From contig OZ241830.1 of assembly GCA_965202585.1 (NCBI GenBank), positions 21,204,001 through 21,268,000 of the forward strand: a stretch of 64,000 nt of DNA, written 5' to 3'. The notes beneath the pieces were generated by a model. It saw nothing but the letters and a program-made list of their open reading frames with translations, did no database searches and had not been told where the DNA came from. The stretch comes from Thalia democratica. Taxonomy: Eukaryota. Positions 26,301 through 64,000 of this stretch are shown in pieces; position 1 is the first letter of the stretch, and every line of letters begins with the position of its first letter. The position numbers were made by a program, and so were the translations under genes.

Positions 26301-29300
26301 CCATTAATCATAATTTTCGTGAAAAACAAAGTTCTTTCGACATTCGAAAATATTTCGAGCTTGAACATAATTACGGAAAAAGTTTAGTGCGAATCTTTGT
26401 TTCTATGACAAAAAGCCTAGAGGCATCGAAATTTGAAGAAAACTGTATCTATTAAGTTACATTATTCAAATTGATAAAAAATAATAATATGTTAGCAAGT
26501 TTCGTTAAAAAAACGCTATTATACTTAAAAGTCAGTTAGATTTGCAAATTTCATACGTCAGTAATAAAAGCATTTTTTAATTTTTCTTTAAATTTTAGTT
26601 ACTAAAACTTTATTTTTTATTAATTTTTTATAAGTTCGGGTAAGGTGGATAAGAGATAAGGGTATAAATTTAAAAAAATAAAATCGAGCTTTGATAACAT
26701 TTTCTGGCTCAGCAAATATGCAAATCAGACAGACTTTTATGTAAGCTTTCCTTTAAAATGCTTATAGTAATAATACTACCAGGTTTTTCAACTAACCAAG
26801 TTTTAATATTTGATATAGTTCCAAGCTTATTAGGTTTGCTTAGTTTAAACAAAACCTATACTAATTCAGAAAACATAGAAATATAAAGTTGGCTTTGAAA
26901 ACGTAATTTACTCTAAAAATCAACTTACCATTAAATAATTTTCGTAATATTTATCAAGTTTTGTTCGTAATGATATTTTTCCTGTACTTTTGTTAATTTT
27001 AAAATATTTTTTTGACGTTTCATCAATATCGTAGTAAATAACTCCGTTTTTGGAGATTTCTACTTTTTGTGTGTCCTGTAATTTTTCAAAAAATAGTTCA
27101 AAAGTGTTCCAAAACTTTAGTTTAGCTTTAACTTATGATATTCTCAGTACTATTTGTTTTCAATAAACAACAAGCAGTTAAACAAGTTTAACTAATCGAT
27201 CACAGTCTACCTAAAATATTTATAAAGTTTATAAATAAATTTACGTCCTAAAATAACTTTTTTCAGTAGTTTCAAATTTTATTTAATATAGCAGGTTTTA
27301 TTTAATATAGCATAAAACACACACATACATGTAAATATTTATATATATAAACAAACAAAATCTTACATCATTAATAGAATACACCGGTTCATTTATCGCA
27401 TCGTAGTCTTTTGCATTGACACTTATAATTTTTTGTCCAACTGTAAAATTTTCATTGATAGTGGTTTGATATTCGTTTTTATCAAATATTGGAGAGTGTT
27501 CGTTTACGTCCAATACGTTTATTGTGTAGTTTTCTAGTGTACACCTGTAAAATATTCAAGTTTAAATATACCTTCAGTTTGAATTATAAATTATGTTTTT
27601 TATCGTTATTAAATACACTTGAACTAACAACGAAGGTACTCCATTATCGCAAGCTTGTATTTTTATTTTATAGCTATTTGCTGTTTCTCTATTTAGATTT
27701 TTCTTTAACACAAGTAGGCTTGTATCTTGATTGTACTCGAAGTATTTTGATTTTTCGTTTGTTTCTGCATGTTTTAAACATTTATAAACTTTTATAATTT
27801 CAATGGTTTTTAAAAATATTATCAACTTTGGTGTTGTAGCTATTGATTATTAAATCGACTAAAATCTTTTAGGTACTGTAAATGTACTCCTAAGTATATA
27901 TTTAAACTAAAATGTATGCTTAGAAATAAATAAGTATTTTAGGGTATTTGTGAATAAACAAACCTTTATCAAATATTTTTATATTTGTCATGGAATTTTG
28001 ACCATTATCTGCGTCAGTAGTAGTTATATACGCTATGACGTCTCCTAATAAACTATCTTCTTTTATAAATCCTGTTTTGTTAATTTAGTTTTTTAAATAA
28101 TTTTATAGAACACTTACTTGTTTTAAGTAGTTATATTAAAAGTCCTTTATTTAGTATTAAGTTTTCAAATTTTATCTTTGAAAATTATATGCTGCAAAAT
28201 CTGTAACTAAAGCTAGTCTAATATTGTTTTGATAGCAAACTTGCTTATTTATTTTGTCAAGAACATTCCAAATTGGAAAACTCAGGTGCTAATAAAAATT
28301 ATAAGTTGTAATATGAGTACTCAATTTAGTATATAAAAGCTTTATAATAAAACTAATTAGATGTTAGTATATAGGTATGGTCTTAAAATACTTATTTGTT
28401 ATGACTTTTCGCTGTCTTCAATTATTTACATACAAAAACACTAAAAAACCTTAATTGTTTTTAAAATAAATACAAGTTACAAAGTAAAACTTAACAATTT
28501 ATTTATTATCATCTACTAACGAAATAAGTTTTGAAAAAATAAATAAAGTAGATTATAAAAATAGTTAGATACATTCTAAAACTAAATAAACAACAAAGCT
28601 TATTATTTTTAATGACCAAAATCGTTAATTAAGTAAGCTCTAATCAACTTTGTTAATAAACCAGTTTTATTTAGATTAAAAAAAAAATTTTTTTCATTTG
28701 CAAATTGTTTACTGCACATGTTAATTTGCACAATTTAATACTGAATAAATTTCGTATGCTGTCATCCAAAAACACAAATAAAAATAAAAGTGTTTTGACA
28801 GAAAAGTTTGAAAAGTATACGGTTCAATAAGTAGCATTTTAGATTTTTCAAACAAATGCACTTATTTTCGTATCAATCTTTTCTACAATGTTTACTGCGC
28901 ATAAAAGCTTTTAAAACACTGTTACTTGATATTGTAAGGCGCTTAAAATATCTGTACAAAGTTCAAGTTGCGTCTATTGCCAGTTTACTGCATAATGTTT
29001 ATAAACACTAAAAAAAATTGTAAATAAAAAAGGTTTTTAATTTTGTCTACTGTGGAGCTTTAAAGGTTATAAAGTTTAGAAACTTATTAGTTTCAGACTA
29101 TATTATATAAACTAAGACATTTTTTCCGTAAACTTATTCAAAAATAGGTAGATAAACCATTAAAAAAAACATTAAAAACTATTTGAAATATTTGTTATTT
29201 ATAGAAGTGTTTAATATTGTTTAGTACAACATTTTTAATTATAAACTCACCTGTGTTTCTATCAAAACTATCAGAAGTTGTAAAGAAATCAACATCTAGA

Positions 29301-32124
29301 ACAGGTTTGTGATCATTTACATCTTCGATATTCAGAATCACTTTTGTTGTAGCATATTGGGGTTTTTTACCGTTATCACTTGCTTCAATTATAAATGTTA
29401 TACTGAAAAATATAAGTGAGAATTAGTTTTGTAGAGATAATCTATAAAGAACTTAAAAAAACAAAAAATATACAAAGGTTTTTTTGTACATACCCGTTAT
29501 GGAGTTGCCAGTTCAGTTTCTTTTTAATGATTACGTCACCACTTTCCCTATCAACCGATAACAAATCAGGATATGTAGATTTATCAACTCTAGGTGGCGC
29601 ATCCAATTGACCCACAATTTTGTAGTGAACCTGATTGTTGTCAAGACTACCATCTTTGTCCTTAGCAACCACAGTGGTAACCAACGACCCAATCGGGGAA
29701 TCTTCTGGAACTGAGATAACAGAGTTTTCAACATCAAACTCGGGTCTGCAGTCGTTTACGTCACTGATGTGAATTGTGACGTATGTTGATGACGTCATCG
29801 GAGAATTACCCTTATCAGTTGCAGTTAATTTCAATTGAATTATCGACTTGGTTTCGTGATCTGGTAGGAATAAACTGGTAAACTAAATTTACACAGTCAC
29901 TAATTTAAAACAGTCAAAGCAACTTAAAGAAGTAGTCTTATGAATACTTTTTTTAAAAAATAATTAATTAATGAAAATTGTAAAGAGCCTTACAATATTT
30001 TGTAAAAAAATAATAAAATTTGGAAGTTAAACCGTATTCCATTTAATTTTAAATATAATTTTAATAAGTATTTATTTTTTGTAAGATTTTAGTATAATCC
30101 TTAACAAACTAATAGTTTCACACAGGGTTTAAAATTTACTTTAAAAATTTAGCATTTATAATTTGTGAAGTTATACCAACCCAGTTTTCTTTTAGTTCTT
30201 AGTTCAAGATTTTGTCTTTTTGACAACAAAAATTGAGCATTAGCTGCATAAGGATCGTAAATTTCAAAATAGTCATTAATCTGCAGTTTGTATTCAACTA
30301 CGGCGTTCTTGTCTGAAAAATTTAAAACAACTATAAAAAAAATGGTATTTCTAAATAAAACTAAGCTTCTGAAGATACATTTTATATATATATAAAACTA
30401 AGTTATACAGTTTACAGTAAGTTTCTGTCAACTTTGTAACTGTAAAATAATCTTAAATTGTTTTTTCGTTAGCCATACGATTATACTATAGATGTCGAAA
30501 TGTTTATGTGTACTATAAACTTATCACAAAGTACCTACTTATAGTAGAAACTATAGAGTAGTTTTTTGATAACAAATTTAAAAGCGTGTAAACGAGTTTT
30601 TGTCAAAAATAGAAGTCAAAAGTGACTTTAACTGTCGGATGTTTTCAGTTGTCGTAAATTTTGACAAGAAAATCAAAAAATTCATTGATAAGAAAAATAT
30701 TTTGTTGTAAAAATAACACGTTTAAACCATATGGTGAACCATTGTTACTTGATCTGACATTTATAAAAGGTTTTAGATTTATCTTATCAAAAGTCTTGAC
30801 TATTTCAAGGATAGATTTACACGTGTTTTAAAATTGAATTAAAAAAGACACAGTTTTATATACTTTTTCTAACAATCTTTTATAAAATTAAGCTTTTGTT
30901 TAGTAAGTATAACTTAAACTCAAAAACACCTACAAAACCCAACCTAAAAACTTTTAGTTAAATATAAAATAACCGTTATATGAAAGCATTGTTAAGCATT
31001 TAAAATCAATAATGTTTTGTTTATACGATTTTTTTATAAGTGGAAGCGAGTTTGTTTCTTTTGTTAAATACTTTTACTTTTATTATTTTAGTCGCATAAA
31101 ATAAATAAACTTAACTTAAAAAAAATAACTTCAAAGCCTTTATACTCTGAAGCAATTTATTATCATTAATTATATATAGATATTTTTTTAAATATAACTT
31201 ACTACAGTCTGCATCGGATGCTTTATATTGATTAATGTTAAACAGAGATCCAACTTTTGAGTCTTCAGGAATTTCGACTGGAGTTAGATTAGATGCAAAC
31301 ACGGGGAAATTATTGTTGACGTCATCAACTTTAACTCTGACAATTTTGACGGCGCGAATGTTGTCGCTGTTCAAGTTTTTTGACAAACCTACCTGTTATG
31401 TGGTCAGAACGGTTTATTTGAACGTTTTTATTGTGTTTATACTTACGTTGATACTTTTTTTTTCAGAAGTCTTGTAATACCTTAGAATTTCAATTTATTC
31501 CAAAATATTTGATATTCAAGTTTGAACTGGTTATCATATATTTTATTTTAATTCAAGTTTATATGAGAAAATTAATTTACTTATTTTTTTATATCACTTA
31601 ACAAAAAAAATAAATACTAATTTTTTTGTTTAGTAGTAATAAATAAAAGATACTAACTAGTACATTAAGAATGCAATAACAGTTATCAGCACAGTCTGAT
31701 GTGAAATTGATGTTTCTATTTATTCTTATGTTTCCAGAATAAATATCAATTAAAAACAAGTCTTTAACTTCAATCTGATTATCTTGTTTTTGATTGTAAA
31801 CTTTTTTGATTGAGTAAAACCAAGTTTCATTATTTTTTGAGCTCGTAGCTGGCATGTACTGTAACTTTTCTGCTATTGTTGAGCCTAAAGTTTTAAAAAG
31901 CTCATTTGAACTATATAAAAAATCATAGAACTTACTTGATAAACAATATTTTGTCATAAGTATTTAAACGGTTTGTAAATAATATTTATTTTGAAGTTTA
32001 TATAATAAAACAAACCTATTTTGATATCTTCTTTTATGATGACATCAGGTATTTCAACAGATCTTGTTTGTTTACAAAAACTACTTGAAAACACAAACAA
32101 AAATAAAACTAAAGCTTTTATCAT
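22989..32124 (-). CDS. Protocadherin (delta-like, CM2 motif), complete: complement join(32016..32124,31658..31884,31203..31392,30181..30312,29494..29860,29251..29402,27964..28071,27629..27764,27367..27544,26929..27075,25792..25968,25412..25576,25048..25248,24716..24828,24529..24649,24012..24096,23784..23924,22989..23311); 3072 nt, 1023 aa
   Basis: Signal peptide MIKALVLFLFVFSS; EC1 Cys-X5-Cys; linkers DVNNNFP, DVNDCRP, DVNDHKP, DVNEHSP; TM LILVIVILLIVLVLVFMIGCVI; CTEDCNVYGHSDNCWLP matches the CM2 consensus CTxECxxxGHSDxCWMP. All 17 introns GT-AG and phase-compatible with no internal stop. Confidence 0.9.
23784..23924 (-). CDS. Left protocadherin exon 17 (CM2 motif)
   Basis: CTEDCNVYGHSDNCWLP. 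Confidence 0.92.
24012..24096 (-). CDS. Left protocadherin exon 16 (cytoplasmic)
   Basis: NTNPLSRNPC...PNPYN; TTACAG acceptor, GTATGT donor. Confidence 0.75.
24529..24649 (-). CDS. Left protocadherin exon 15 (cytoplasmic)
   Basis: EKESLKN...QPPMNFTSQ; phase fit. Confidence 0.7.
24716..24828 (-). CDS. Left protocadherin exon 14 (cytoplasmic)
   Basis: ETTHVYNCN...KTETFP; AG/GT ends and phase fit. Confidence 0.75.
25048..25248 (-). CDS. Left protocadherin exon 13 (TM)
   Basis: Hydrophobic helix followed by KNQRKK. Confidence 0.9.
25412..25576 (-). CDS. Left protocadherin exon 12 (EC6, degenerate)
   Basis: Open frame with phase 0 at both ends; GMHRLVVK strand. Confidence 0.78.
25792..25968 (-). 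CDS. Left protocadherin exon 11 (EC5/EC6)
   Basis: INVTASDFGSPEPL...VKVTI; donor less certain. Confidence 0.82.
26929..27075 (-). CDS. Left protocadherin exon 10 (EC5)
   Basis: YFKINKSTGKISLRTKLD, then GTAAGT. Confidence 0.88.
27367..27544 (-). CDS. Left protocadherin exon 9 (EC4/EC5)
   Basis: VLDVNEHSPIF...INENFTVG...AKDYD. Confidence 0.92.
27629..27764 (-). CDS. Left protocadherin exon 8 (EC4)
   Basis: LLVLKKNLNRET...IQACDNGVPS; acceptor CATGCAG chosen by phase. Confidence 0.85.
27964..28071 (-). CDS. Left protocadherin exon 7 (EC4)
   Basis: FIKEDSLLGDVIAYITTTDADNGQNS. Confidence 0.88.
29251..29402 (-). CDS. Left protocadherin exon 6 (EC3/EC4)
   Basis: IEASDNGKKPQ...IEDVNDHKP. Confidence 0.92.
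29494..29860 (-). CDS. Left protocadherin exon 5 (EC2/EC3)
   Basis: DHET...ATDKGNSP...ISDVNDCRPEF...VPEDSPIGS. Confidence 0.95.
30181..30312 (-). CDS. Left protocadherin exon 4 (EC2)
   Basis: KNAVVEYKLQINDYFEI...LELRTKRKL. Confidence 0.88.
31203..31392 (-). CDS. Left protocadherin exon 3 (EC1/EC2)
   Basis: VKVDDVNNNFPVF...EIPEDSKVGS...ASDADC. Confidence 0.92.
31658..31884 (-). CDS. Left protocadherin exon 2 (EC1)
   Basis: STIAEK...LFLIDIYSGNIRI...CADNCYCILNVL; 227 nt as in paralog. Confidence 0.88.
32016..32124 (-). CDS. Left protocadherin exon 1 (signal peptide)
   Basis: MIKALVLFLFVFSSSFCKQTRSVEIPDVIIKEDIKI; 109 nt as in paralog. Confidence 0.88.
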
Positions 32125-32384
32125 TTTAAAATCTGAATAATGTAAAAATGTTTAAAAGTACGAATAAATATTTTTAAAACAAATTTCACAGTTGTATAAA
32201 TAACTTAATCATGTTTTATAAATAAATTTGACTCTAACATAGTAAATATGTGCAACCAGTATTTAATTAAAGGATTTGAAAAACAGTAATTATCAATTAA
32301 GTAGTTCGCTTAAAGACTAGATATAAAAAGTAGCGTACTTAAAGTAACATGGTGATAGATTTAAAATAGTTTCAATCAATTTAT

Positions 32385-32645
32385 CACTGAATCAAAGTAC
32401 TTTGCAAAGCTCAAACGCGTGTCATTTCACTTTTTTCAATACTTACATCAAACACACAAAAGTTTATAAGCCAAGTCAGGTGGGTATAAAGACAAAAGTA
32501 TTACAACTTATTACAACGTCACTCATAAACGTAATTATCTTCACTTTTGGCGCACTTTTAACATGTTCTTTGGTAATTGCACAAAATACACGTCTATTAC
32601 ACAAAATGACATTTGAAATTACATCCGCTGCAACTTTGAAGCCGG
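32385..32645 (-). promoter_or_regulatory. Conserved upstream block (P-block) 5' of left protocadherin ATG exon
   Basis: Highly similar to 59830-60105; contains GCGGATGT (ETS-like) and ATGAGTGACGT (CRE/AP-1-like). The regulatory role is inferred; it could be a repeat. Confidence 0.45.
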
Positions 32646-35600
32646 TTTGGTTGCATTAAAAACCAATTTTGTCAGGAGTTATTATGTGTGTAATCGAGTT
32701 TTAAATGTTTTTTTTTATTTAAAAAAAGTTTTGCTCATTTAAAATAACCTTAGTTTTTTATTCTTTGTTTCACTTTTGTTGTTTTACTTATTTTTTCTCT
32801 CCACATGCACTATTGTTTACTAGCTTTCTTTTAATCGTGGAAAAGAATTTGCTCAGAGTGTGGAAAAGAATATTAATTATGTATGATTGTTGAATGCTTT
32901 TCTAAAAAATAAGTTTTGGAAACGATAATATTATATTCAGAAACGTTAAAAACCATATTTTAAACATAAGTAGTAGTTTTGAAATATTTTAGTACAATTA
33001 ACACTAATTTAAAAAGCATTTAGTTTAAAATTAACTCGTAACAAGTTTAAACACAAAAGTTTTAGCTATAAATATCAAAAACAGACCTTTATCATGACTA
33101 TTTATAGTAAATTTACAAACGTTTAGTCAACATAGAACTTTGTGATATGGTTAAGACTTTAAGTAAAGAGTATAGTTATTTTGAGTTTTTTAAATGTATT
33201 GAAATTTGTATTTATACTCAAAGCATCATCTACTAGGTACAGTTAATGTAATTATAAATAAGATAAATGTACTGAACACTTAAAAATATATTTTTTTTTT
33301 CAAAATAGTTTTAACTAAACAGAATATAAAGTTTAAACAATACTTTAAAATTAAAATTAAAAAATAAAAATTCTGCATTCTTATATTAAAGTATCTTAAT
33401 TTAAATACCTAAATAAAAAAAAGGTTTGTTTTATTTAACACTGTTACAGTTAAAGATGAAACTTTAAAGTATAAATCATATGATAGTCATAAAACAAAAG
33501 CAATTTGTTTTTAAAGTCTAAACTATCACAAGACAATAGTAGTAAAACAAAAAATAGCTAAAACAAAATTAAATTAAGTTTAAGCACAACACACACCTTA
33601 TTGTGTTTAGCGTAAAAACAAATTGAAAATTTATTTATGAGAGAAAAGATAATTTTGAGAAAAAATACAAACCGGTTTTTTAATGAGAGAAAAACTTTGA
33701 GTTTGTATTTTGAGTTTTGTTGCAGCAAATTCTATGTAAAGATATTTTTCAAACGCATTTAAAATAATTTTAAAGTTTATAAAGTTTTTTATTGTTTCTA
33801 TATTTCAAAACAGTAAAAAAAAATTCGAAAATTGCTGAACAGTTTGGAAATAAATTTTATAAAAATCATATAACTGGTCTTACAATTTAAAACAGTTTAA
33901 AGTCACAGTACCTTCTCATTATAGAATAATAAAGCTAATAATTTTTTTTAATAATTGACATAAAAATATGAAGTTGTTTAAACAATTTAAAAATTACTTT
34001 AGCTTTCTAAAAAGGCTTTGAAAAAAATCATAAACGAATATTTTTATATGTTTGGGCTTTAAGAAAACAAATAAAGAGATCTAAACTAAAATTTATATTT
34101 ATAAAATATTTAAACACTAATGAATTTATTCTTTCAAACTATTTTTCAAGAATTCCCAAATCAAATTGTTTGTGTTGTTTTTTGATTTTGAAACTTAACT
34201 AAAATTTATATTTTACCATAAATTCAATGGTTTTAAGTAAAAAATTTGGTTTTAACTAAAAGTTTTTATAAAAAGCATTCGGTAAGGATTTTAAATTTTC
34301 ATAGCTATTACAACTACAAGATTGTTTAAATTTTCAATAGTTAAGTTTAAATTAGAATAAAGCTACGTTAAAATTCATCTCAACTTTAAGCTCACTTAGT
34401 ACTATTAGCTACATTTTTACTTAAGCAATGTTTACTTTGAAAATTAACTATAAGAAAAAACAAAGCTTAATACAGCTTTTATTATCACTATTCTTGTTGT
34501 TATATTGATTTTAAAATTTAACTAAAATTTAAACTTTACTATAAATTCAATCTTGATATTAAAATTTAAATTGTTTAGTTTTTAAGTAAAAATTTTCAGT
34601 AAACATTTGTTTTTATTTTATTGTTTAAATGCTATCTTCCATGCCTGTTACATATCTTTATAGATTTATCTAAGCACTGACGAGGTATTTGACCGAAACT
34701 TAGTTTGTAAAATAGTTCTTGAAAGAATAAATTAATTAACGATTATTTGATTGAAAACTTATTGAAAACTACGTAATATTTGCACTAAACTCAAAATTGT
34801 TTAAAAACTAAACATTTAACTTTAAATCTTTTTTTTTTAATAATTTTTAAATCTTTATAAAGTAGTTCATCTACATCTCTAGCTTTAATTAAATTTTAAA
34901 ACATATAACTCTACTAAAGTTTTAATGTATTTAAAGTACTATAAATTAATTTTCGAACATTATTCTTTTTGTTTAAATAAGTATGTTTTAAGAATATTTA
35001 CAGTTTACCAATTTATCTTGTTGATTTATTAATCTGGTTGACAAGTTTACGCAAAAAAAAAACATACACATAACAAAGTTTATGTTTTTATTTATACATA
35101 CTAAAACATCTATGTATTAATAGACTTTATCATTATTTTTGTCAATTTTAATTTATTTGAACTGCATTTTAGATAAAGGTGATCTTAAGTAAAACTATAT
35201 CGTTGCTTCATATTAAAATTTGTTGACTTTCCCACAAAAACAAAAACCAAATCCTTGTACTTGTATATTTTCGCTATAAAATATCACTATAAAACTTATT
35301 TGTTTTGTTTGTCTTTCTCAAGAAACAATAAAAAACACTTCTTTTAAACGATATTAAACGTATATTTACTTCATAAAAAATATATCTAGTTTTAGTTTTT
35401 AAACTAGTATTACAAATATACACTAAATAAAACTTAAAACTTTTTTAAGAATTTCCCATACAATACTAAAAGTTGAATCGTATGCATTATACTTTATTTA
35501 AGATATATAATGTTACTTAAAACTTGTCTACTTTTAATGGATTTTCCCACCTAGACGAGTAAAACGCTATATTTTAATCGATACCACGAAGATAAGGTTA

Positions 35601-37624
35601 AACGGTGTAGGTAGTTAAGACAAGTAAACGATATTTAAACTGAATTATTTATGTTCTGTCCGGTTTATTTGGACAATTATGCTTGGTTATTAAAATATTC
35701 ATGAAGTGTTGACAATTTTTTTAAGCGTATTGAATGAAATCAATAAAGGTTTCGCCAATGAATAATAAAAGTTTAAAAGGAAAAGTTTACGCTAATTTGT
35801 GACGTGATGTTAAAAAAAGGTTTCCTTTTTGTGTTAGACGCAAAGCATGTTTTCTTAAACTAAATTTCCTTTTGACTTAAGTAAAACTTGGGTACAATAT
35901 AAAATATTTAAAGCTTGGTTAATAATCAATATAAACAAAAACTTAAATATCAGTTACTGTTACTGAGAATGAGTAGTTAAACATGTGTCATTAGCTTTTA
36001 CAATGATAAACTAATAGTTTACTTTACATGAACAAAAAGAAAAAGTTTAGTTATTAACAGTGACTGTTGTAGAAAAAATTAAACTTTAAAAATTGTCCTA
36101 GAATTTAATACTTTTAAGTGTGAATTTATCACATGCTTTTTATCAAAACTAAAAAGTAGAAATTAAAACTTAAACAACTAATGTTTATTTCAATTGTAAT
36201 TTTGACAAGTGTGCAAAATAGATGAGTCTAATTGTACTAATTGATCACAATTTATAAACAATAAGTAAATAAACAGTTTTTTTTTCAAATAAACTGAAAA
36301 TATTAATAATTAATTTTTCATGAATTTGTAAATTTAAAGTTTTAGCCAGTTTTCTATTTACTAAATGTTAAAACTTTGTCAGCTTGATTTGGAAGCACAA
36401 TTCAAAACTTATTTACACGTCAGTCAATCAAAAAAAATTATTTGAAATTTAAAGCCAACACCAGATTTTTTTAGCTGAAAACTTTTAATTTAAGTGTTTT
36501 TTTTATAAATATTTTTTCGGATGATTGTTGTAACTTCAAACCAAACATTTTCAAAATAAAAAAGTATATGCTACAATGAACTATGTAAAAGCGCTTAAAC
36601 TTAATTCTTTAAAACACAGCTGTAATTAAAGAACATAAATTTGTGTTAACTTTGAACTGTAAACTCGTAAACAAACACTTAGCTTTTATAACAATGATCC
36701 GTCTAAAGTTTTGATATTAAACGCAAGTTCATGTTTATACTTCAAACGGTCAAACCGAATTATGTTTATCTAATTTGTAGAATTTTTAATAACTTGTTTG
36801 TATAAAAATATTGGGATTACATGTTGTATTATGTTTTGTCTTTCTATTTTAATTTGCACACAAAAAGTAGAAAAGTGGTTTTGACCTTATTTCTTTAAAA
36901 TGTTTTAGCTTAAGAATTTTTATTTGTGAAGTAATTTAATAACAGAAAAATAGTAGTTTATTTAGAAAAATAGTTTTTAAAGCTTACTAAATTAGAACTA
37001 AAAAAAGTTTTATTTTATTTTGATAATATAAAACCAGTTGTTATGTTAAAACTAATAAAATTTAACCAAAATACTAACAAAACCAAAACTCTTTTCATTC
37101 TAAAAGATTGGTTTAGATTTTTGTAAACAAAACTAAAACTAAATAAAAAACTTTTCTGCATCTACAAACTTTCAAAACACAACTTAAACTTTTTACTCAA
37201 TAAAAAACTTTGATAAAAAGACAAATAAAGTCTTAAAACTTTTGAATTCAAATATTAAAGTTACAGACGATGCTCGTAAAAATATTTTACTATCGAAGTT
37301 AAAATTTTAAAACTCAGCTTTTCAGCAATGTTCTACTACTACAAGTTGCTTGTTGTTTGTTTATGACAAAATAAACAATATACCTTCTGAAGATACTCAA
37401 AGTGTTCAAGCAAACAAAAGCACACTTAAAGTATTTATATAAAATTACTTAAAAGTGCTTTATCAAAAATACAAATTGACAAACAAATAAAAGCATATCC
37501 TTAAAATATGCTTTATCAAAACAACTAAGGGAAACATATGATTTTTTTAAAAATTAATTTTGTTTTTAAATTTATTTAATTTTGCATTTTACTTTTTTAA
37601 AATAAAAGCTTACAGCCTTTAATG

Positions 37625-38773: not shown

Positions 38774-39042
38774 CAGGGCTTCTTAAATCATTTTCTTATG
38801 GCCCCTTTTGAAGAATTTAAAAAAATATGGACAATTTAATAATTTTTTTTAACAAACTACCCTTGAATACACCTAAAACCTTTTTTTGTTTTTCATTATG
38901 AACTCCATAATATTTAGTTTTAGTTTAAAAATAAGATCTCATGGCTCCCTACCAACAGCCCACTCTTTGACCCTTTTGTAGTTTATGGCCCCCTAAATTT
39001 CTAACAAGATCGTAGTGGTATGGCCCACTTTAGAAAACCCTG
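38774..39042 (-). mobile_element. hAT MITE shared by both arms (left copy)
   Basis: CAGGGCTTCTTAAA / TTTAGAAAACCCTG ends; TSD ATCGAGAT/ATCTAGAT. Confidence 0.85.
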
Positions 39043-46484: not shown

Positions 46485-47005
46485 TAAATAATTTATCATT
46501 GAATCAAAGTTTTTTGCTCAGCTCTAAGGCATGTAATTTCACTTTCTTTAATATTTACATCGAACAAACAAAAAGTCGAATCTGGCGGGTATAAATACAA
46601 AAGTATTACAACTTATTACAATGTCACTCATAAACGTAATTATCTTCACTTTTGGCGCACTTTTAACATGTTCTATGGTAATTGCACAAAATACTACACA
46701 AAATGACATTTGAAATTACATCCGCTAGCAACACCTCAATACTACCCATAATTTTAATGACATCACAGCAAATTATGGGCAGAATTGTTTGCAGCAATTC
46801 TACCCATAATATAGTGCCCATAAAATACTACCCATAAAAATTCCTACCGCTTTAACACAAGTGAAAATTATTTTGTTTATGAGTGACGTGGTAACAAGTT
46901 GTAATATTCATACCTATCTGACTCAACTTATGTATAGTCGATGTTAGTATTGAAAAAAGTGAAATGACATGCTTTAGAGTTTAGCAAAGTACTTTGATTT
47001 AATGA
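46485..47005. repeat. Palindrome centre: two back-to-back P-block copies (46485-46732, 46855-47005) around a CCCATAA-motif spacer
   Basis: 46600-46728 aligns directly to 32490-32628 at over 90%; 46855-47005 aligns to 59935-60100. Confidence 0.85.
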
Positions 47006-50000: not shown

Positions 50001-51104
50001 CTTTTTCAAACCTTTTGTATAGATCAAATCAATAAACTTACTTCGACAATTGCCCGTACTCTTAAGCAAACAGAATCAATAAGAACAAGTGCATATAATG
50101 TATTAAAAAAAGCTATTTGTATTTTATAGTATTGGATAAAATGTTTAAAACATTTTATTTACGAACACTTTATTATGTCTTTTGTGAAAGCATATTAGAG
50201 TAACATGTAAACTTTAAATTAAATATAGTGATAAGTAAATATTTTATGATTTAATAAATACTTTGTAATATAGATAGTTTTGCACGATTAGTGGAGGTTT
50301 TTCATTAAAAGTACAAAGCTTACTGATTTTGACTGATTATTTTGTAGGTTATAACAGTTGTTTAATTTTTTGTAATTTCTTAGAAATTAACAGACTAATT
50401 TCTATTTCTATCAAAACTATTTTTATCTAAAAAAACTTTTTTTTAAAGCATATCTTAATTTATATTTATGTTTATAGTCCATATTTTAAGAAACTCAAAA
50501 TTTTTTAATTAATCTTTTTAAACTATTTCTTTTGTTTGAATATAAACAAGAATACCCAGTCTTCAATGTAAATTGTCCATAGTATGTTTGTAAAAAACAT
50601 ACTACATTGTTTTGTTTTTAAGCTAAAATATTCAAGTACATTTTTTTAGTTTTAGCTTGAATTTGCAATATAACAGTTCAAAATTAACAGTTGTTATGAA
50701 AGTTTTATTAGTTTATTTGAAAACCTTGGCCATAAATGTTTTATTTTACTTTCCGTATAACAACCATATAAGTATTTTATAGTATTGTTTAAAAGTTGAA
50801 GCATCAAAATAATGAATAATAGTTGTTGTCGCATAGTATGAAACAGATCATGAAAGTAATAAAAAGTTAAATATTTTTAGAGGACATATTTTATAACTAA
50901 TTCAGTTGTAAATACATACTTTAAAATTATAATACCAAACTTATTTAAACTTAAAGAATTGAAAGTGGCTTTATATGTTTAATAATTTTTTTATTTGCAC
51001 CGTAACTGAACTAATATCAAAACATACGAAATTTAGTAATTTAATTTAAAACAAGTTTTCAGTTTTACCAAAAGTTTATAGTACGTTTTTGAATGAAAAA
51101 CAAA

Positions 51105-51205
51105 AAAAAAGTTTTTTAAACCATGTATTGGTCAAAACTGTTTAGTTTTTTAAAACTTAAAAAACTAAACAGTTTTCGACCAATACATGATTTAATAAAC
51201 TTTTT
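51105..51205. repeat. Near-perfect short-loop hairpin (about 50-bp arms)
   Basis: CATGTATTGGTCAAAACTGTTTAGTTTTTTAA ... TTAAAAAACTAAACAGTTTTCGACCAATACATG. Confidence 0.85.
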
Positions 51206-54200: not shown

Positions 54201-54485
54201 ATTTTATTAGTTAAGTTTTAGAACAATTAATATAACTTTTTTAGTGAATATGAAAATTTTACAAGTTTGTTTTTTAATATTATGTCGGAAAAATTAATTT
54301 CGGTTTTTTTCTGAAAAATGTAAAAGATTTGATATAACTTAATGAATATCAATTGAAGTAACAACGACAAAACAAAAGCAATTAGTAGGATACTATGGTA
54401 TCAACTTTAATTGCAATAACTATAAAGAGAATTTATTTTCAATTATTTTTACAAACATTTCGTTAAAGTAAAACAGTATCTAGAT

Positions 54486-54768
54486 CAGGGTTTTTCAAAG
54501 TGGGCCATAACATTACGATTTTTTAGAAACTTAGGGGGTTATAAACTACAAAGGGTCGAAAAAGTAGGCCGTGAGTAGTAAAGCGGTCTAAGGGGGCCAT
54601 GAGGCCTTATTTTTAACTTATACTAAATTTTATGGAGTCGATAATGAAGAGCGAAAAAAAGGTACTAGACGTATCTACGGGTAGTTTTCTGAGAAAAAGT
54701 ATTAAAGGGGGCCGTAGCTTTTTTAATTTCTTCAAAAACGACCATGAAAAAATTATTTGGAAATCCTG
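54486..54768 (+). mobile_element. hAT MITE shared by both arms (right copy)
   Basis: CAGGGTTTTTCAAA / TTTGGAAATCCTG ends; TSD ATCTAGAT/ACCTAGTT; paralogous position to 38774-39042. Confidence 0.85.
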
Positions 54769-57700
54769 ACCTAGTTAAATACTTTAACATTAAAAACAAT
54801 CAAATTATTTTAGGTAGGTATGAAAGCTGTTTTTTAAATATATAGAAGTATTTAAAATTTTTGTTTTAGTTATCGTTTAAATATTCTTCAGCACTGTTGT
54901 TTGTTGATGTTACTTGATATTTTTAAAAAAACAGTTATTTAAAAAATAAAATAGATAATAATTTATTTTTTACTTTGCAATCTAATGATAAATTGATCGT
55001 CTTAACTATTGTTTTAAATAAGTTAATGTATAATGACAGTTTGATAACTTTTTTGTGATTTAAAAAATTAAAATTTTATCAAGTAAACTTTTGAAGATAA
55101 ATGCTACTTTTATAACAGTTTTTGATCTTAAAAAATAAAATAATTGTGGCAAAAAAATTAATCATTATCGACACTTTTATTAATTAAGCGTACATCAATT
55201 TATTACAAGATTTTGAATATTATCGATCTTTTTCTTTATACAAACTTAAGATTAAAAACTAATCAGTTTTTATATTAAAAGCAGTTATCAAAGCAACCTT
55301 TTTTATACATTAACTATAATTTCTGATACTACAAAGTAAGTTTGAGACAATTTATATATAAAACTTCTAAGTGTAACAAGCTATAAAAAACGTATGAAGA
55401 CATTCTCTCATATTTTAACTTGTAATACAATTGTTTTTCTTTAGCATTATTTCTCTTCTTTTTAACATTTTCTTTATTCCCATGCAGAATGCACTACAAG
55501 ATGTATGTGGAATACATAACCTCTATGTTCTGCAAAAGTTAAGTGGAACTACTTAAAAAAAATTAATAATATGCTTTAGTTTATGTATTGTCTTTGATAT
55601 TTTTTAGAACTTTTAATACATTTAAGAGTGTAAGTTTTTGTTTTATAAAAGTCAAATGAATAACAAAATAGATTGAAAAAAAAATATAAAAAATAAAATT
55701 TTTACCTTATTTGTTTTGATGTAGCATTTTTTAAGGATATGCTTTAATTTGTTTGTCTACTAGTATTTTTGATAAAGCACTTTTAAAACAATTTTATATA
55801 AATACTTAAAGTGTGCTTTTGTTTGCTTGAACACTTTGAGTATCTTCAGAAGGTGTATTGTTTATTTTGTCATAAACAAACAACTAGCAACTTGTAGTAG
55901 TAGAACATTGCTAAAAAGCTGAATATTAAAAATTTTAACTTCGATGGTATAATACTTTTACGAGCATCGTCTGTAACTTTAATATTTGAATTCAAAAATT
56001 TTAAGACTTCATTTGTCTTTTTATTAAAGTTTTTTATTGAGCAAAAAGTTTAATTTTTGTTTTGAAAGTTTGTAATTGCAGAATTTTTTTTTATTTAATT
56101 TTAATTTTGTTTACAAAAATCTAAACTAATCTTTTAGAATGAAATGAGTTTTTGTTTTGTTAGTACTTTGGTTAAAGTTTATTAGTTTTAACATAACAGC
56201 AATTTTTTTTATATTACCAAAATATTATAAAACTATTTTTTAGTTCTAATTTAGTAAGCTTTAAAAACTATTTTTCTAAATAGACTACTATTTTTCTGTT
56301 ATTAAATATCTATATAAAATAAAAATTCTAAAGATAAAATTTGGAAAGAAATAAGGTCAAAACCATTTTTTTACTTTTTGTGTGCAAAATAATACATAGA
56401 GACAAAACATGATATAACATGTAATCCTAATATTTTTATGCAAACAAGTTATTAAAAATTCTACTACCTCGATAAACATAATTTGATTTGACTGTTTGAA
56501 GTAAAAACATGAACTTGCGTTTAATATCAAAACTTTAGACGGATAATTGTTATAAAAGCTAAGTGTTTGTTTACGAGTTTACAGTTTAAAGTTAACACAG
56601 ACTTATGTTTTTTAATTGCAGCTGTGTTTTAAAGAACTAAGTTTAAGTCATTTTACACAGTTTATTATAGCATACACTTTCTTATTTTGAAAATGTTTGA
56701 TTTAAAAATACAATAATCATCCTAAAAGTGTTTACAAAAAACATTTGAATTAAAAGTTTTCAGCTAAAAAAATCTAATGTTGATTTTCAATTTTGAATAA
56801 ATTTATTTGAGCTGACTGACGTGTAAATAAGTTTTAAATTGTGCTTCCAAAACAAGCTGACAAAATTTAAACCTTGGTTAATACAAAACTGGCTAAAACT
56901 TTAAAATTACAAATTCATGAAAAATTAATTATAAATAATTTTAGTTTATTCAATATTTTTAATTTACTTATTGTTTATAAATTGTTATCAATTAGTACAA
57001 TTATACTCATCTATTTTGCACACTTATCCCAATTACAATTGAAATAAGTTTTAGTTATTTAAGTATTAATGTCTACTTTTTAGTTTTGATAAAAAGCATG
57101 TGATAAATTCACACTTAAAAGTATTAAATTCTAGATCAATTTTTAAAGTTTAGTTTTTTCTACAACAGTCACTGTTAATAACTAAACTTTTTCTTTTTGT
57201 TCATGTAAAGTAAACTGTTAGTTTATCATTTTAAAAGCTTGTTTAACTACTCATTCTCAATAAAAGTAACTGATATTTAAGTTTTTGTTTATGTTATTTA
57301 TTAACCAAGCTTTTAATATTTTATATTGTACCCGAGTTTTACTTAAGTCAAAAGGAAATTTAGTTTAAGAAAACATGATTGCATCTAACACAAAAAGGAA
57401 ACCTCTTTTTTAACATCACGTCACAAATTAGCGTAAACTTTTCCTTTCAAACTTTTATTATTCTTTGGCGAAACCTTTATTGATTTCATTCAATACACTG
57501 AAGAAAAATTGTCAACACTTCATGAATATTTTAATAATCAAGCATAATTGTCCAAATAAACCGGACAGAACATAAATAATTCAGTTTAAATATCGTTTAC
57601 TTGTCTTAACTACCTACACCGTTTAACCTTATCTTCGTGGTATCGATTAAAATATAGCGTTTTACTCGTCTAGGTGGGAAAATCCATTAAAAGTAGACAA

Positions 57701-59829
57701 GTTTTAAGTAACATTATATATCTTAAATAGAATATAATGCATACGATTCAACTTTTTAGTATTGTATGGGAAATTACTAAAAAAGTGTTAAGTTTTATTT
57801 AGTGTATATTTGTAATACTAGTTTAAAAAATATAACTAGATATATTTTTTATGAAGTAAATATACGTTTAATATCATTTAAAAGAAGTGTTTTTTTGTTT
57901 CTTGAGAAAGACAAACAAAACAAATAAGTTTTATAGTGATATTTTATAGCGAAAATATACAAGTACAAAGATTTGGTTTTTGTTTTTGTGGGAAAGTCAA
58001 CAAATTTTTATATGAAGCAACGATATAATTTTACTTAAGATCACATTTAACCGATATGCAGTTCAATTAAATTAAAATTGACAAAAAAAAAAACAACGAT
58101 ACAGTGCATTAAATCATAGATGTTTTAGTTTATGTTTCGTTTTTTGTATAGATTTATTAACTCTATAAATAACAAGATTTACAGGTAAACTATTAACATT
58201 TTTATTTGAACAAAACGAATAATAGTCGAAAATTAAGTTATAGTATACTTTAAATACATTAACATATTAGTAGACTTATATGTTTTAATTAAAGCTAGTA
58301 GTGAAGATTAACTAGTTTAAAAAGGAGATTTTATTTTTGAAAAAGACTTTAAGGTGAATACTGAGTAATCAAACAATTTTGAGTTTAGCGCAAATATTAC
58401 GTAGTTTTGAATAAATTTTCAATCAAATATTTCGTTAATGATTTTTTAAAGCTTATTTAGAAAACTTAAGTATTTTTTAAATTATTTAATCATCTACATT
58501 ATTTTCTATCAACTATTAAAGATATTAATTAACTTAATCATTCAGTGATGATAAGGTATTACGAATTGAAACTGTTTCAAATTATAAGACGAGTCAAATG
58601 TTTTTTTTTATGAAATTTATTTCCAAACTGTTGAGGAATATTTGAATATTTGTTTTCTAATATATAAACGATCAAAAACCTTATAAGTTATTTTAAATGC
58701 ATTTGAAAAATATTTTTACATAGAATTTGCTGCAACAAAACTCAAAACACAAATTTAAAGTTTCTCTCTCATTTAAAAACCGGTTTGTATTTTTTCTCAA
58801 AATTATCTTTTCTCTCATTAATAAATTTTCAATCTGTTTTAACGCTAAACACAATAAGGTGTGTGTTGTGCTTAAACTTAATTTAATTTTTCTTTATAAT
58901 AGCTGGTTTTATTTTTACTTCTATTGAATTTTGTGCTAGTATAGAAAATAGATTATTTTTGTTTTATGACTAACATATGATTTATATTTAAAGAGTTTCA
59001 TCTTAAACTGTAACATTATTAGGTAATATAAATTTTGTTGAAACTAGTTTAGTTAAGGGATTTTAATTAGGATACTTTAATAAAAGAATGCATAACATCT
59101 TTTATATATTAAAGTTTAAAATGTAAAAGTATCATATTAACTTTAATGACTGCTTAATTAAAACTTTTACAACTTTGTTTAATTTTGTTGTTTAATTTTC
59201 AATGGTTTATTACGTTTATCTTGATTATAATTACATTTACTGCGTCTGGTAGATGATGCTTCAAGTATATATACAAATTTCAATACATTTTCGAAAATCC
59301 AATTAGCAATACTCTTTACTTAACTTAGAAACTCAAGCTTATCATAAAGTTCTATTTTGAGTAAAATTTTGTATATTTGTAAAGTACAAAATAAAGGTTT
59401 GTTTTTGATAATTTTAAGTAAAATATATATGTTTAATCTTGTTACGATTCAAATTTTAACTAGATGTTTTGAAATGAACTTTAGTTGTACTAAAATATTT
59501 CAAAACTAATACTTCTGAAAACTACTACTAATATTTCAACGTTTCTGAATATAATATTATCGTATCCAAAACTTTTTTTTTGGAAAGCATTCAACAATCA
59601 TACATTATTAATATTCTTTTCCACACTCTGAGCAAATTTTTTCCACCATGAAAAGAAAGCTAGTAAACAATAGTGCATGTAGAGAGAATAAGTAAGTAAA
59701 ACAACAAAAGTAAAACAAAGAATAAAAAAGTAAGGTTATTTTAAATGAGAAAAACTTTTTTGAAATAAAAAAACATTTAAAACTCGATTACATACATAAT
59801 AACTCCTGACAAAATTGGTTTTTAATGAA

Positions 59830-60105
59830 ACCGAACCGGCTTCAAAGTTGCAGCGGATGTAATTTCAAATGTCATTTTGTGTAATAGACGTGTATTTTGT
59901 GCAACTACCAAAGAACATGTTAAAAGTGCGCCAAAAGTGAAGATAATTACGTTTATGAGTGACGTTGTAATAAGTTGTAATACTTTTGTATTTATACCCA
60001 CCTGTCTCGGCTTATAAACTTTTGTGTGTTTGATGTAAGTATTGAAAAAAGTGAAATGACACGCGTTTGAGCTGAGCTAAGTACTTTGATTCAGTGATAA
60101 AATGA
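59830..60105 (+). promoter_or_regulatory. P-block 5' of right protocadherin ATG exon
   Basis: Paralog of 32385-32645. Confidence 0.45.
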
Positions 60106-60359
60106 TTGAAATTATTTTAAATCTACCACTATTGTTACTTTAAGTGATCGCTATTTTTTATATCTAGTCTTTAAGCGAACTATTTAATAGATAATTACTG
60201 TTTTTCAAATCCTTTATTTAAATACTGGTTGCAGATATTTACTATGTTAGAATCAAATTTGTTTATAAAACATGATTAAGTTATTTATACAACTGTGAAA
60301 TTTGTTTTAAAAATATTTATTCGTACTTTTGAACATTTTTACATTATTCAGATTTTAAA

Positions 60360-63238
60360 ATGATAAAAGTTTTAGTTTTATTTTTGTTTGTGTTTTCAAG
60401 TAGTTTTTGTAAACAAACAAGATCTGTCGAAATACCTGATGTCATCATAAAAGAAGATATCAAAATAGGTTTGTTTAATGATATAATCTTTAAAACAAAA
60501 TATTTTTTTACAAACCATTTGAATACTTTTGACAAAATATTGTTTATCAAGTAAGTTCTATGATTTTTTATATAGTTCTAATGGGCTTTATGCAACTTTA
60601 GGCTCAACAATAGCAGAAAAGTCACAGTACATGCCAGCTACGAACTCAGATAATAATGAAACTTGGTTTTACTCAATCAAAAAAGTTTACACTCAAAAAC
60701 AAGATAATCAGATTGAAGTTAAAGACTTGTTTTTAATTGATGTTTATTCTGGAAACATAAGAATAAATAGAAACATCAACTTCACATCAGACTGTGCTGG
60801 GAACTGTTATTGCATTCTTAATGTACTAGTTAGTATCTTTTATTTGTTACTACTAAACAAAAAAATAAGTATTATTTTTTTTTGATAAATGATATAATAA
60901 AAAAAGTAAATTGATTTTCTCACATAAACTTGAATTAAAAAAAATATATGATATCCAGTTCAAACTTGAATATCAAGTTTTTTAGAATAAATTGAAATTC
61001 TAAGTTATTACAAGACTTCTAAAAAAAAGTATAAACGTAAGTAAACAATAAAAACGTTCAAATAAACGGTTCTGATCACATAACAGGTAGGTTTGTCAAA
61101 AAACTTGAACAGCGACAACATTCGCGCCGTCAAAATTGTCAGAGTTAAAGTTGATGACGTCAACAATAACTTTCCCGTGTTTGCAAGAGATTTGAGTCCG
61201 CTAGAAATTCCTGAAGACTCAAAAGTTGGATCTCTGTTTAACATAAATCAATATAAAGCATCCGATGCAGACTGTAGTAAGTTATGTTTTAAAAAAAACA
61301 TATGTATACAATTAATGATAATAAATTCCTTCAGGCTTTAGAATATATGGCTTTGAAATTACTTTGCTTGAAAATTAAGTATATTTATTTTATGCGACTA
61401 AAATAATAAAAGTAAAAGTATTTAACAAAAGAAAAAAACTCGCTTCCACTTTAATAAAATTTGTACAAACAAAATATTATTTATTTTAAATGCTTAACAA
61501 TGCTTTGATATAACGGTTAGTTTTTAAGTTTGACCAAAAAAAACTAGGTTGGGTTCTACAGGTGTTTTTGAATTTATGATAACAGTAAGTTATCTACATT
61601 AGACAAAAGCTTAATTAAATAAAGGATTGTTAGAAAGTATATATAAAACTGTGTCTTTTGTAATTCAATTTTAAAACACGTGTAAATCTATCCTTGCAAA
61701 AGTCAAGTATTTTCATAAGATAAATCTAAAACCTTTTATAAATGTCAGATCAAATAACAATAGTTCACCATATGGTTTAAACGTGTTATTTTTACAACAT
61801 CATATTTTTCTTATCAATGACTTTTTGATTTTAATGTCAAAATTTACGACAACCGAAAACATCCGACAGTTAAAGTCACTTTTAACTTCTATTTTTGACA
61901 CAAACTAGCTTACATAATTTTTTTTATTCTTATCAAAAAGCTTTATAATTTTTACTATAAATAAGTATTTTGTGATAGGTGTATAGTAAACATGAGAATT
62001 ACGACATCTATAGTATTATCAAATGGCTAATTGAAGAAAATAATTTAAGATTATTTTACATTTACAAAGTTAATAGAATCTTACTGTAAACTGTATAACT
62101 TAGTTTTTTTTTATATAAATTGTATCTTCCGAAGCTTAGTTTTATTTAGAAATATTAGTTTTTTTTAATAGTTGTTTTACCTTTTTAGACAAGAACGCAG
62201 TAGTTGAATACAAACTGCAGAATAATGACTACTTTGAAATTTACGATCCTTATACAGCTAATGCTCAATTTTTGTTGTCAAAAAGACAAAATCTTGAACT
62301 AAGAACTAAAAGGAAACTTGGTTAGTATAATTTCACAAATTATAAGTTCTAAAATTTTTAAGTAAATTTTTAAAATCTGTGTGAAACTACTAGTTTGTTA
62401 AGGATTATACTTAAATTTTACAAAAAAAAACTTATTAACATTATATTTTAAATTAAATGGAAAACAATTTAACTTCAAAATATTATTCATTTTTTACAAA
62501 ATATTTTAAGGTTCTTTACAGTTTTCATTAATTATTTATTGTTAAAAAAAGTATTCATAAGACTACTTCTTTTAGTTGCTTTGACTGTTTCAAATCAGTG
62601 ACTGTGTAAATTTAGTTTACCAGTTTATTCCTACCAGATCACGAAACCAAGTCGATGATTCAATTAAGATTAACTGCAACTGATAAGGGAAAATCCCCAA
62701 TGACGTCATCAACATACGTCACAATTCACATCAGTGACGTAAACGACTGCAAACCCGAGTTTGATGTTGAAAATTCTGTTATTTCAGTTCCAGAAGACTC
62801 CCCGATTGGGTCGTTGGTTACCACTGTGGTTGCTAAGGACAAAGATGGTAGTCATGACAACAATCAGGTTCACTACAAAATTGTGGGTCAAATGGATGCT
62901 CCACCTAGAGTTGATAAATCTACATATCCTGATTTGTTATCGGTTGACAGGGAAAGTGGTGACGTAATCATTAAAAAGAAACTGAACTGGCAACTCCATA
63001 ACGGGTATGTACAAAATTAACCTTTGTATATTTTTTGGATGTTTGAGATTATCTCTACAAAACTAACTCTCACTTATATTTTTCAGCATAACATTTATAA
63101 TTGAAGCGAGTGATAACGGTAAAATACCCCAACATGCTACAACAAAAGTAATTCTGAATATCGAAGATGTAAATGATCACAAACCTGTTCTAGAAGTTTA
63201 TTTCTTTACAACTTCTGATAGTTTTAATAAAAACACAG
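60360..63238 (+). CDS. Protocadherin paralog, 5' part: join(60360..60468,60602..60828,61087..61276,62189..62320,62638..63004,63087..63238); continues beyond the window
   Basis: Exon lengths, phases and splice sites identical to exons 1-6 of the left gene; frames open; 25 amino-acid differences counted by hand. Confidence 0.9.
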
Positions 63239-64000
63239 GTGAGTTTATAATTGAAAATGTTGTACTAACAATATTAGACACTAGTATAGATAAAAAATAT
63301 TTCAAATAGTTTTTAATGTTTTTTTAATGGTTTATCTACCTATTTTTGAATAAGTTTACGGAAAAAATGTGTTAATTTATATAATATAGTCTGAAACTAT
63401 TAAGTTTCTTAACTTTATAACCTTTAAAGCTCCAATCTAGACAAAATATAAACTTTTTTTATTTACAACGTTTTTTAGTGTTTATAAACATTATGCAGTA
63501 AACTGGTAATAGACGCAACTTAAACTTTGTACAGATATTTTAAGCGCCTTATAATATCAAGTAACAGTGTTTTAAAAGCTTTTATACACAATAAACATTG
63601 TAGAAAAGATTGATACGAAAACAAGTGCATTTGTTTAAAACATCTAAAATGCTACTTATTAAACCGTATACTTTTGAAACTTTTCTGTCAAAATACCTTT
63701 ATTTATTATTTGTGTATTTGGATAACAGCAAACGAATTTTATTCAGTGTTAGATTGTGCAAATTAAGATGTGTAGTAAACAATTTGCAAAAGAAAAACAT
63801 ATTTTTATAAAACTAAATATGTATAAACTTAACTGATTTATTACAAAGTTGATTGGAGCTTACTTAATTAGCGATTTTGGTTATAAAAAATTATAAGCTT
63901 TGCTGTTTATTTAGTTTTAGAATGTATCTAACCATTTTTATAATCTACTTTATTTATTTTCTCAGAATTTATTTCGTCAATAGATGATAATAAATAAATT

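Follow-up and report, generated by a model that had tools for sequence, protein, structure and literature searches.

The 64,000-nucleotide stretch of the Thalia democratica genome analyzed here (assembly GCA_965202585.1, contig OZ241830.1, positions 21,204,001 to 21,268,000 of the forward strand; hereafter the window) carries two divergently oriented cadherin genes, which we call A and B, in the opposite arms of a palindrome of about 54.5 kb. On the evidence laid out below, we consider it highly probable that this palindrome is a genuine, old inverted segmental duplication within a small, lineage-specific cadherin cluster. Genes A and B, together with a third close copy (C) to the right of the window, are intact and constrained, and the breakpoints of the duplication are still readable at a private promoter-like element and at a mobile element. 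The locus is thus a well-resolved case of the growth of an adhesion-receptor family in an invertebrate, in which a regulatory-plus-coding unit of about 25-30 kb has given one tandem and one reverse copy. It also offers a dated case of inverted segmental duplication, and is of value for annotation as a locus with three near-identical 18-exon genes, one of which crosses the window edge.

Extent and structure of the palindrome

The host is a marine animal with AT-rich DNA. The window is free of N runs and maps to a single 81-Mb contig of the 802-Mb assembly. We added flanks from the same assembly (40 kb on the left and 120 kb on the right) and ran a self-comparison over the resulting 224 kb; positions outside the window are given in window-equivalent coordinates throughout. 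Inside the window, anti-parallel collinear homology runs from 28496, paired with 64000, inward to 46654, paired with 46856, as found by minus-strand self-BLAST and by an inverted-repeat scan (E = 0 for the long blocks). An initial annotation of this DNA, made from the letters of the window, had described a palindrome of at least 35 kb at 28496-64000 with arms of 17-18 kb. The homology itself stands, but these limits do not: 28496 is the mirror of the window's right edge. With the flanks included, 21333-34043 pairs with 71047-58425 in one 13-kb alignment, and weaker collinear blocks carry the pairing farther outward (19473-19665 with 71713-71512, 19048-19384 with 72054-71712, and 18918-19050 with 73470-73333). 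Comparison with sequence beyond 64 kb therefore both confirms the giant inverted repeat and extends it to 18918 and about 73470, enlarging the arms to about 27 kb each. Its principal parts are the following.

18918-46726, minus strand (gene-forward orientation): arm A, from self-BLAST of 21333-46726 against 71047-46856 and an extension of 18918-19665 against 73470-71512
46856-64000, plus strand: in-window part of arm B, from self-BLAST; the arm runs on to about 73470
46655-46855, no strand: unpaired center of 201 bp, from BLAST and the alignment of the R element described below
34040-34743, no strand: insertion of 704 nt private to arm A, from the arm comparison

Arm A contains a relic piece of spacer, the relic of an ABC transporter exon, cadherin gene A, 14 kb of upstream DNA, and a distal copy of R. 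The start codons of A (32124) and B (60360) lie 28 kb apart around a center near 46750, in agreement with the original estimate of about 14 kb of duplicated upstream DNA per gene, and the estimate of a spacer of about 200 bp was likewise accurate. Measured in 1-kb steps, arm-to-arm identity ranges from 63% to 94%, with its minimum 1-4 kb from the center; the identity of the self-BLAST blocks is 88% in the outermost block and about 69% close to the center. Arm-specific indels of 172-704 nt interrupt the alignment, and the arm-specific insertions reported at the outset are real, as exemplified by the 704-nt insertion listed above.

Promoter-like elements, a mobile element, and a conserved upstream block

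Each ATG is preceded, 225-600 nt upstream, by a promoter-like, TATA-bearing element of 377 nt that contains GGGTATAAAG, which we refer to as R. Each 13-kb upstream block has, at its far end, a second and partial copy of R. R has seven matches genome-wide, all of them within the cadherin cluster, and we rejected the reading of R as a dispersed transposon on account of this low and localized copy number. The R copies in the window and the other elements considered in this section are as follows.

32349-32725, plus strand: proximal R of gene A, from the R alignment; carries GGGTATAAAG
59758-60132, minus strand: proximal R of gene B, 95% identical to the proximal R of gene A
46490-46732, plus strand: distal R at the inner end of arm A, R positions 30-286
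46856-47008, minus strand: distal R at the inner end of arm B, R positions 33-201 only
18694-18725, minus strand: R remnant of 32 nt, R positions 251-282, by alignment of the R copies
18726-18905, plus strand: full-length copy of an interspersed repeat of about 180 bp at the outer boundary of arm A, from BLAST
35379-36000, minus strand: conserved upstream block of arm A, about 3.3-3.9 kb 5' of the gene A ATG
57240-57846, plus strand: conserved upstream block of arm B, from the arm and copy comparison
88996-89619 (window-equivalent): conserved upstream block of copy C, from the copy comparison

The short remnant at 18694-18725 keeps the exact junction between spacer and R that is seen before copy C at about 77.8 kb, which marks it as the original position of the distal R of unit B. 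Positions 82-180 of the adjoining interspersed repeat recur, at 91% identity and in direct orientation, in the palindrome spacer at 46727-46825. The center as a whole consists of R positions 202-282, retained in arm A only (46655-46726), this 99-nt repeat fragment, and 30 further nt. The repeat, which looks like a short interspersed nuclear element (SINE) or a miniature inverted-repeat transposable element (MITE), occurs on all large contigs, with more than 1,400 first-look candidates across the genome (92-95% identity). A description of the spacer as a unique 'patchwork' was rejected in part, as most of it is a fragment of this high-copy repeat.

The upstream block of about 620 nt is 95-99% identical among A, B, and C, compared with 81-90% for the background; it is non-coding and private to the cluster, and a core of about 250 nt persists in the relic spacers (17651-17868 and 75311-75554). 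A search of the 18-64 kb interval against Rfam gave no match. Possible readings of the block are an enhancer, a 5' exon, and a tract of recent conversion.

The cadherin genes and their products

Gene models were obtained with a codon-scored, splice-aware chain applied to A and B separately, followed by projection through a three-way alignment of A, B, and C; the limits of the transmembrane (TM) exon and of the 3' stop were set by hand.

22989-32124, minus strand: cadherin gene A, ATG at 32124 and stop at 22989, 18 exons, 1032 amino acids (aa), from the gene models, Pfam matches on exons, and RNA contigs
60360-69420 (window-equivalent), plus strand: cadherin gene B, 18 exons, 1035 aa; the in-window part, 60360-64000, holds exons 1-6

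The same 18 exons are open in A, B, and C, each gene having a single terminal stop and the proteins measuring 1032, 1035, and 1036 aa, respectively. All splice junctions of A and B are GT/AG, so that the full 18-exon models bear out the original statement that both genes keep their frames and splice sites. A truncation of the right-hand gene just outside the window was looked for; gene B proved to be complete, ending about 5.4 kb past the window edge with its full 1035 aa. The genes of A, B, and C are therefore intact, with A and B in divergent orientation. Copy C has TT, not GT, at the modeled exon-12 donor (window-equivalent 99299-99301); an in-frame donor 15 nt upstream (AAG/GTTAGA, with the slash at the splice site) is common to A, B, and C, and this shared donor may be the real exon-12 site in all copies.

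The protein predicted from the model has a signal peptide (N terminus MIKALVLFLFVFSSSFC), six extracellular cadherin (EC) repeats, one TM span (LILVIVILLIVLVLVFMIG, encoded in exon 13, at 25248-25048 in gene A), and a tail of about 270 aa. The EC linkers are of the DxNDxxP type (DDVNNNFPVF, SDVNDCRPEF, EDVNDHKPVL, and LDVNEHSPIF), the fifth being degenerate. The ectodomain is spread across exons 1-13, and each copy has its own tail exons 14-18. The most likely products are calcium-dependent receptors for adhesion or recognition, and each gene is most likely driven by the proximal R upstream of it, acting as its promoter. In exon 3 (31203-31392), at the start of EC2, A and C read ASNLTPVEIP and B reads ARDLSPLEIP, in identical surroundings; this patch may mark the edge of a conversion tract, or it may determine specificity.

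Transcription and splicing

A marine metatranscriptome run, X11, holds 8% of the 31-mers from the 5' two-thirds of gene A, and its contigs were placed on 26900-32200 at a likeness of at least 90%. These contigs are confined to predicted exons 1-10, with zero depth in all five of the fully intronic depth bins, and single contigs bridge successive exons (a 360-nt contig passes from exon 9 through exon 10 to exon 11, and a 456-nt contig from exon 2 to exon 3). The exon 2/3 junction is fixed by an RNA contig, at CTA/GTTAGT and AACAG/GTAGG, and is conserved in all copies. Because intron-free contigs cannot arise from DNA contamination, the cadherin family is transcribed and spliced as modeled. Of the 20 variant positions listed, 15 show the B/C letter in the RNA, and one X11 contig runs on into sequence identical to exon 8 of a more diverged copy, D, which is described below. 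B/C-like and D-like genes are thus expressed; expression of A itself we can only infer. The divergent transcription initially proposed for the two genes accordingly holds at the level of a family that is spliced and expressed, but not as a statement about A in particular, as the variants found are B/C-like and D-like.

A private family of cadherin copies

When the last 2 kb of the window were compared with the assembly, two more copies appeared, the third in plus orientation (92%) and the fourth in minus orientation. Together with the remains of an ABCB transporter gene that accompany the copies, the wider locus comprises the following features.

92075-102726 (window-equivalent), plus strand: copy C, 18 exons, 1036 aa, in direct tandem after B
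About 135.6-144.6 kb (window-equivalent), minus strand: copy D, diverged, with the same exon sizes and 77% exon identity
About 153.5-157.9 kb (window-equivalent), minus strand: remnant E, with three exon blocks detectable (matches to exons 1, 3, and 13)
388-5422, plus strand: 3' exons of an ABCB (P-glycoprotein-type) transporter gene, in the window to the left of arm A
21331-22069, minus strand: relic of the ABCB last exon and 3' flank downstream of gene A, exon part 21855-22058, from a sequence match
70350-71047 (window-equivalent), plus strand: mirror ABCB relic after gene B, exon part 70353-70553, from a sequence match

B and C form a direct tandem repeat, 83-97% identical, whose period is 31 kb. 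The largest exon finds, genome-wide, A, B, C, and D plus one 42% match on another contig, and nothing else; what the locus contains is a small private family and not a unit of two genes. The initial annotation had seen here a minimal head-to-head cluster and a route to adhesion-molecule diversity different from tandem arrays. Neither description survives the inclusion of the flanks, where C follows in direct tandem 31 kb to the right of B, and D and E lie beyond it: the tandem copies remove the claimed contrast, and what is left is a tandemly arrayed family in which one member is inverted.

The repeated unit consists of a distal R, about 13 kb of upstream DNA, a proximal R, the 18-exon cadherin gene, and the relic of the ABCB last exon, and is present in three close copies, of which A is inverted and B and C stand in direct tandem. 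The spacer that separates the ABCB gene from A (5222-18731) is matched at 70-81%, in direct orientation, by the one that separates B from C (70350-77826). An isolated exon-11-like fragment is found between C and D, at 114748-114936.

Divergence, selection, and sequence exchange

Pairwise amino-acid identity among A, B, and C is 91-93%. The ratio of nonsynonymous to synonymous divergence (dN/dS; Nei-Gojobori method) is 0.286 for A-B, 0.295 for A-C, and 0.289 for B-C, at a dS of 0.12-0.16; by region, it amounts to 0.34-0.44 in the ectodomain and 0.13-0.20 in the tail. All three genes are under purifying selection, and the equality of the ratio across the pairs implies that none of them is drifting neutrally. 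Divergence among the three copies is 5-6% in exons and 12-16% in introns, and in the distal upstream DNA reaches 21% between A and B and 9% between B and C.

We examined exchange among the copies using informative sites rooted with D as the outgroup. Overall, these sites favor the grouping of B with C (34 exonic sites vs 19 and 20 for the other two groupings; 112 intronic sites vs 87 and 66). The favored grouping nevertheless shifts along the gene, from B+C in exons 9-10 to A+C in exon 11 and A+B in exon 13, and the topologies are strongly heterogeneous over nine 1-kb windows (chi-square 66.2, 16 degrees of freedom, p = 5e-8). Such switching of topology along a gene is the signature of patchy gene conversion among the copies, including between the inverted and the direct ones.

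Origin of the palindrome

In the history that we favor, the locus would have begun as an ABCB gene followed by a spacer, X, and a single unit of R, upstream DNA, R, and cadherin gene. An older tandem duplication, carrying with it the ABCB last exon and spacer X, would have given rise to the lineages of B and C. A reverse copy of unit B, reaching from the distal R to a point about 2.4 kb beyond the ABC relic, would then have been inserted into B's own distal R, where the mobile element of about 180 bp resided; template switching during replication or the repair of a break is the likely route. The inverted insertion would have duplicated 99 nt of that element, which would explain its presence now on both sides of arm A, and later homogenization between B and C would have brought their upstream DNA closer together. 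We infer that the palindrome is a by-product of family growth and not a regulatory device.

A different history, in which arm A began as the first of three units in an ancestral direct array, was inverted in place, and then lost the spacer separating it from unit B, appears to us rather unlikely, and is the less parsimonious of the two. It would suit the observations that, over the gene body, B and C lie at about the same distance from A and that the upstream DNA of B and C is much closer than that of A and B (as expected if A were the oldest lineage), and inversions are common in tandem arrays (PMC3283317). It requires, however, an extra deletion of about 4.4 kb of spacer and part of R, placed exactly at the center, and it leaves unexplained the direct-orientation 99-nt piece of the mobile element on both sides of arm A. 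Moreover, the remnant at 18694-18725 and the truncated distal R of B resemble the two halves of one split element.

Several points nonetheless weigh against our favored account of the locus and its genes. The joins at the center and at the outer ends rest on the assembly and on the 26-53% of the center 31-mers present in three runs. The upstream divergence of 9% between B and C, compared with 21% between A and B, leaves the order of events uncertain, as the likeness of B and C fits either later homogenization or a younger B/C duplication. The distal R of arm A is uninterrupted whereas that of B is truncated, so that a simple copy of present-day B leaves some details unexplained. On the side of the genes, just 2 of the 39 RNA contigs are at least 99% like A, in addition to the predominance of B/C letters at the listed variants (15 of 20); copy C is without GT at one candidate exon-12 donor, although it shares the upstream in-frame donor; and the models come from an ad hoc splice-aware script, with the RNA check covering exons 1-11 only.

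Regulatory readings

It is improbable that the palindrome forms a self-contained head-to-head unit of two genes, providing shared or mutually exclusive regulation as an alternative to tandem arrays. Such a unit would be in keeping with two divergent and intact genes, with the two promoter-like R copies that stand back to back at the center, about 125-200 bp apart, and with the 95-99% identity of the 620-nt upstream block in all copies. However, the locus holds at least four genes, including the direct tandem pair B-C, and the arms have not been homogenized as a unit. The conserved block also precedes the tandem copy C, which makes it a feature of the repeated unit and not of the palindrome. 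A distance of 28 kb separates the start codons, and a TATA-bearing proximal R of its own belongs to each gene; the shared or mutually exclusive regulation suggested in the initial annotation finds no support in the data.

We see only a slight chance that the distal R or the conserved block act as alternative promoters, enhancers, or insulators, with one of A-D selected per cell in a manner resembling promoter choice in clustered protocadherins. If this were so, the locus would hold a cell-surface identity code in a non-vertebrate, an independently evolved analogue of the clustered protocadherins.

Assembly

Least probable of all is that the arms are divergent haplotypes joined head to head or a chimeric assembly fold-back: while both A-type and B/C-type contigs occur in every DNA run placed, as a heterozygote would also give, the divergence of the arms (6% in exons, 12-16% in introns, and 21% upstream, locally 30-37%, accompanied by insertions several hundred bp long) greatly exceeds plausible heterozygosity and is the reverse of the near-identical arms that a fold-back gives, distinct copies C and D lie nearby, a dN/dS of about 0.29 in every pair indicates long independent evolution, the outer end of arm A is a structured junction (R remnant plus mobile-element copy) and not a gap, A-specific contigs are present in two studies, and word depth is similar, at about 40-60, for A-specific and for B- or C-specific contigs, with collapsed stretches at about three times that depth. 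We rejected both readings on divergence, selection, and copy number, in line with the original view that a fresh assembly fold-back is unlikely, which the arm identities of 63-94% and the dN/dS values uphold. Three runs, belonging to two studies, contain contigs that depart from arm A at 0-1 positions where B or C would give 14-74 differences; these contigs, which do not address the joins, support the existence of arm A as a separate sequence in independent DNA.

Family placement and comparison with known systems

Pfam, PDB, and homologue searches were carried out exon by exon. The Cadherin family PF00028 was recognized in exon 5 (E 9e-13) and, with E from 1e-5 to 5e-2, in exons 8, 9, and 10. 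A HMMER (phmmer) search of 1.84 billion representatives with the 146-aa open reading frame of one exon matched 9,968 cadherin-repeat proteins and yielded no orthologue, the results being dominated by giant multi-repeat cadherins, whose scores sum over repeats. Against PDB, all matches of the EC2-3 exon were cadherins, with CELSR1 and clustered and delta protocadherin structures scoring best (E 2e-50 to 1e-20) and classical cadherins weaker (E 1e-16 to 1e-9). An Atlas search with exon 5 returned generic cadherin clusters only. The tail exons had no Pfam family match, at the reduced sensitivity of an exon-wise search, and no usable match in the Atlas search. Cadherin_2 (PF08266) gave only a sub-threshold match (E 0.14), on an EC5 exon, and the EC1 and tail exons, searched in the same exon-wise manner, gave no protocadherin-specific Pfam match (PF08266, Cadherin_tail, and Protocadherin).

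With their PF00028 EC repeats, calcium-binding linkers, signal peptide, and single TM span, the proteins belong to the cadherin superfamily, and they share with protocadherins six EC repeats, one TM span, and a tail without a recognized catenin-binding family in the exon-wise Pfam search. However, the ectodomain occupies 13 exons, with introns confirmed by RNA contigs, and not the single large exon of protocadherins, and the locus is not organized as a clustered-protocadherin locus: each copy has its own exons 14-18, there are no shared constant exons, and the orientations from A to E are -, +, +, -, and -. Of the name protocadherin, given to both genes at first, the six-EC architecture is what stands; on present sequence grounds "protocadherin-like cadherin" would be the defensible name.

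The ampliconic palindromes of sex chromosomes have arms that are more than 99.9% identical through arm-to-arm gene conversion. The palindrome studied here resembles them in having arms of tens of kb, a short spacer, and genes in both arms, but its arms are only 63-94% identical and exchange is patchy, so that it is not a homogenized palindrome. In inverted duplications formed by fold-back or template switching (microhomology-mediated break-induced replication, MMBIR, and the DUP-TRP/INV-DUP type), the inverted copy adjoins its source across a short spacer. The present case shares with these its breakpoints in short repeats and a short duplicated piece at both junctions; it differs in being ancient and fixed and in being reconstructed from diverged sequence only, the mechanism being deduced. 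The 'breakage-replication/fusion' model is related to this class (PMC12807874).

The closest parallel is with clusters of tandemly arrayed genes (TAGs), where mixed orientation is common and inverted duplication is a standard part of evolution, more than 25% of neighboring TAG pairs being non-parallel in human, mouse, and rat (PMC3283317). As in such clusters, adjacent paralogues here share one exon structure in mixed orientation, with direct and inverted segmental duplication and patchy gene conversion: exon sizes are common to A (-), B (+), C (+), and D (-), and upstream DNA, introns, and the ABC relic are duplicated along with the exons. Nothing essential differs, although the inverted pair has unusually long collinear arms (about 27 kb) and a very short center. 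No new principle of adhesion-molecule diversification is revealed; this is an ordinary way of gene-family growth.

In vertebrate clustered protocadherins, the variable regions are single large exons in one orientation that are spliced to shared constant exons (PMC3283317). The alpha, beta, and gamma clusters and the present family have in common six EC repeats, one TM span, clustering on one chromosome, gene conversion, and an ectodomain that evolves faster than the tail. In contrast, each gene here has 18 exons of its own, including the tail exons, orientations are mixed, and no protocadherin-specific Pfam domain was found by the exon-wise search. Octopod protocadherins, numbering about 150-170 genes, have expanded by tandem duplication (PMC9795677), and likewise represent a lineage-specific expansion of cadherin-type genes in an invertebrate by local duplication on one chromosome; the present locus differs in having 4-5 genes.

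The transporter gene and its surroundings

A 2.8-kb direct repeat to the left of the window (-30995 to -28199 vs -18001 to -15198, 84%) suggests that the transporter region is itself duplicated. The orphan ABCB exon that follows A and B is in frame, with about 2 of 66 residues changed compared with about 10% nucleotide divergence from the exon at 5222-5422, and the splice-scoring script is able to splice this orphan exon to the cadherin with the frame kept. Two inverted short-tandem-repeat arrays, at 7200-7900 and 11800-12430, separate the ABCB gene from arm A; they are open in several frames (QNPPDQNPP..., KSTRSKSTR...) and have related pieces within arm A at 19787-20459.

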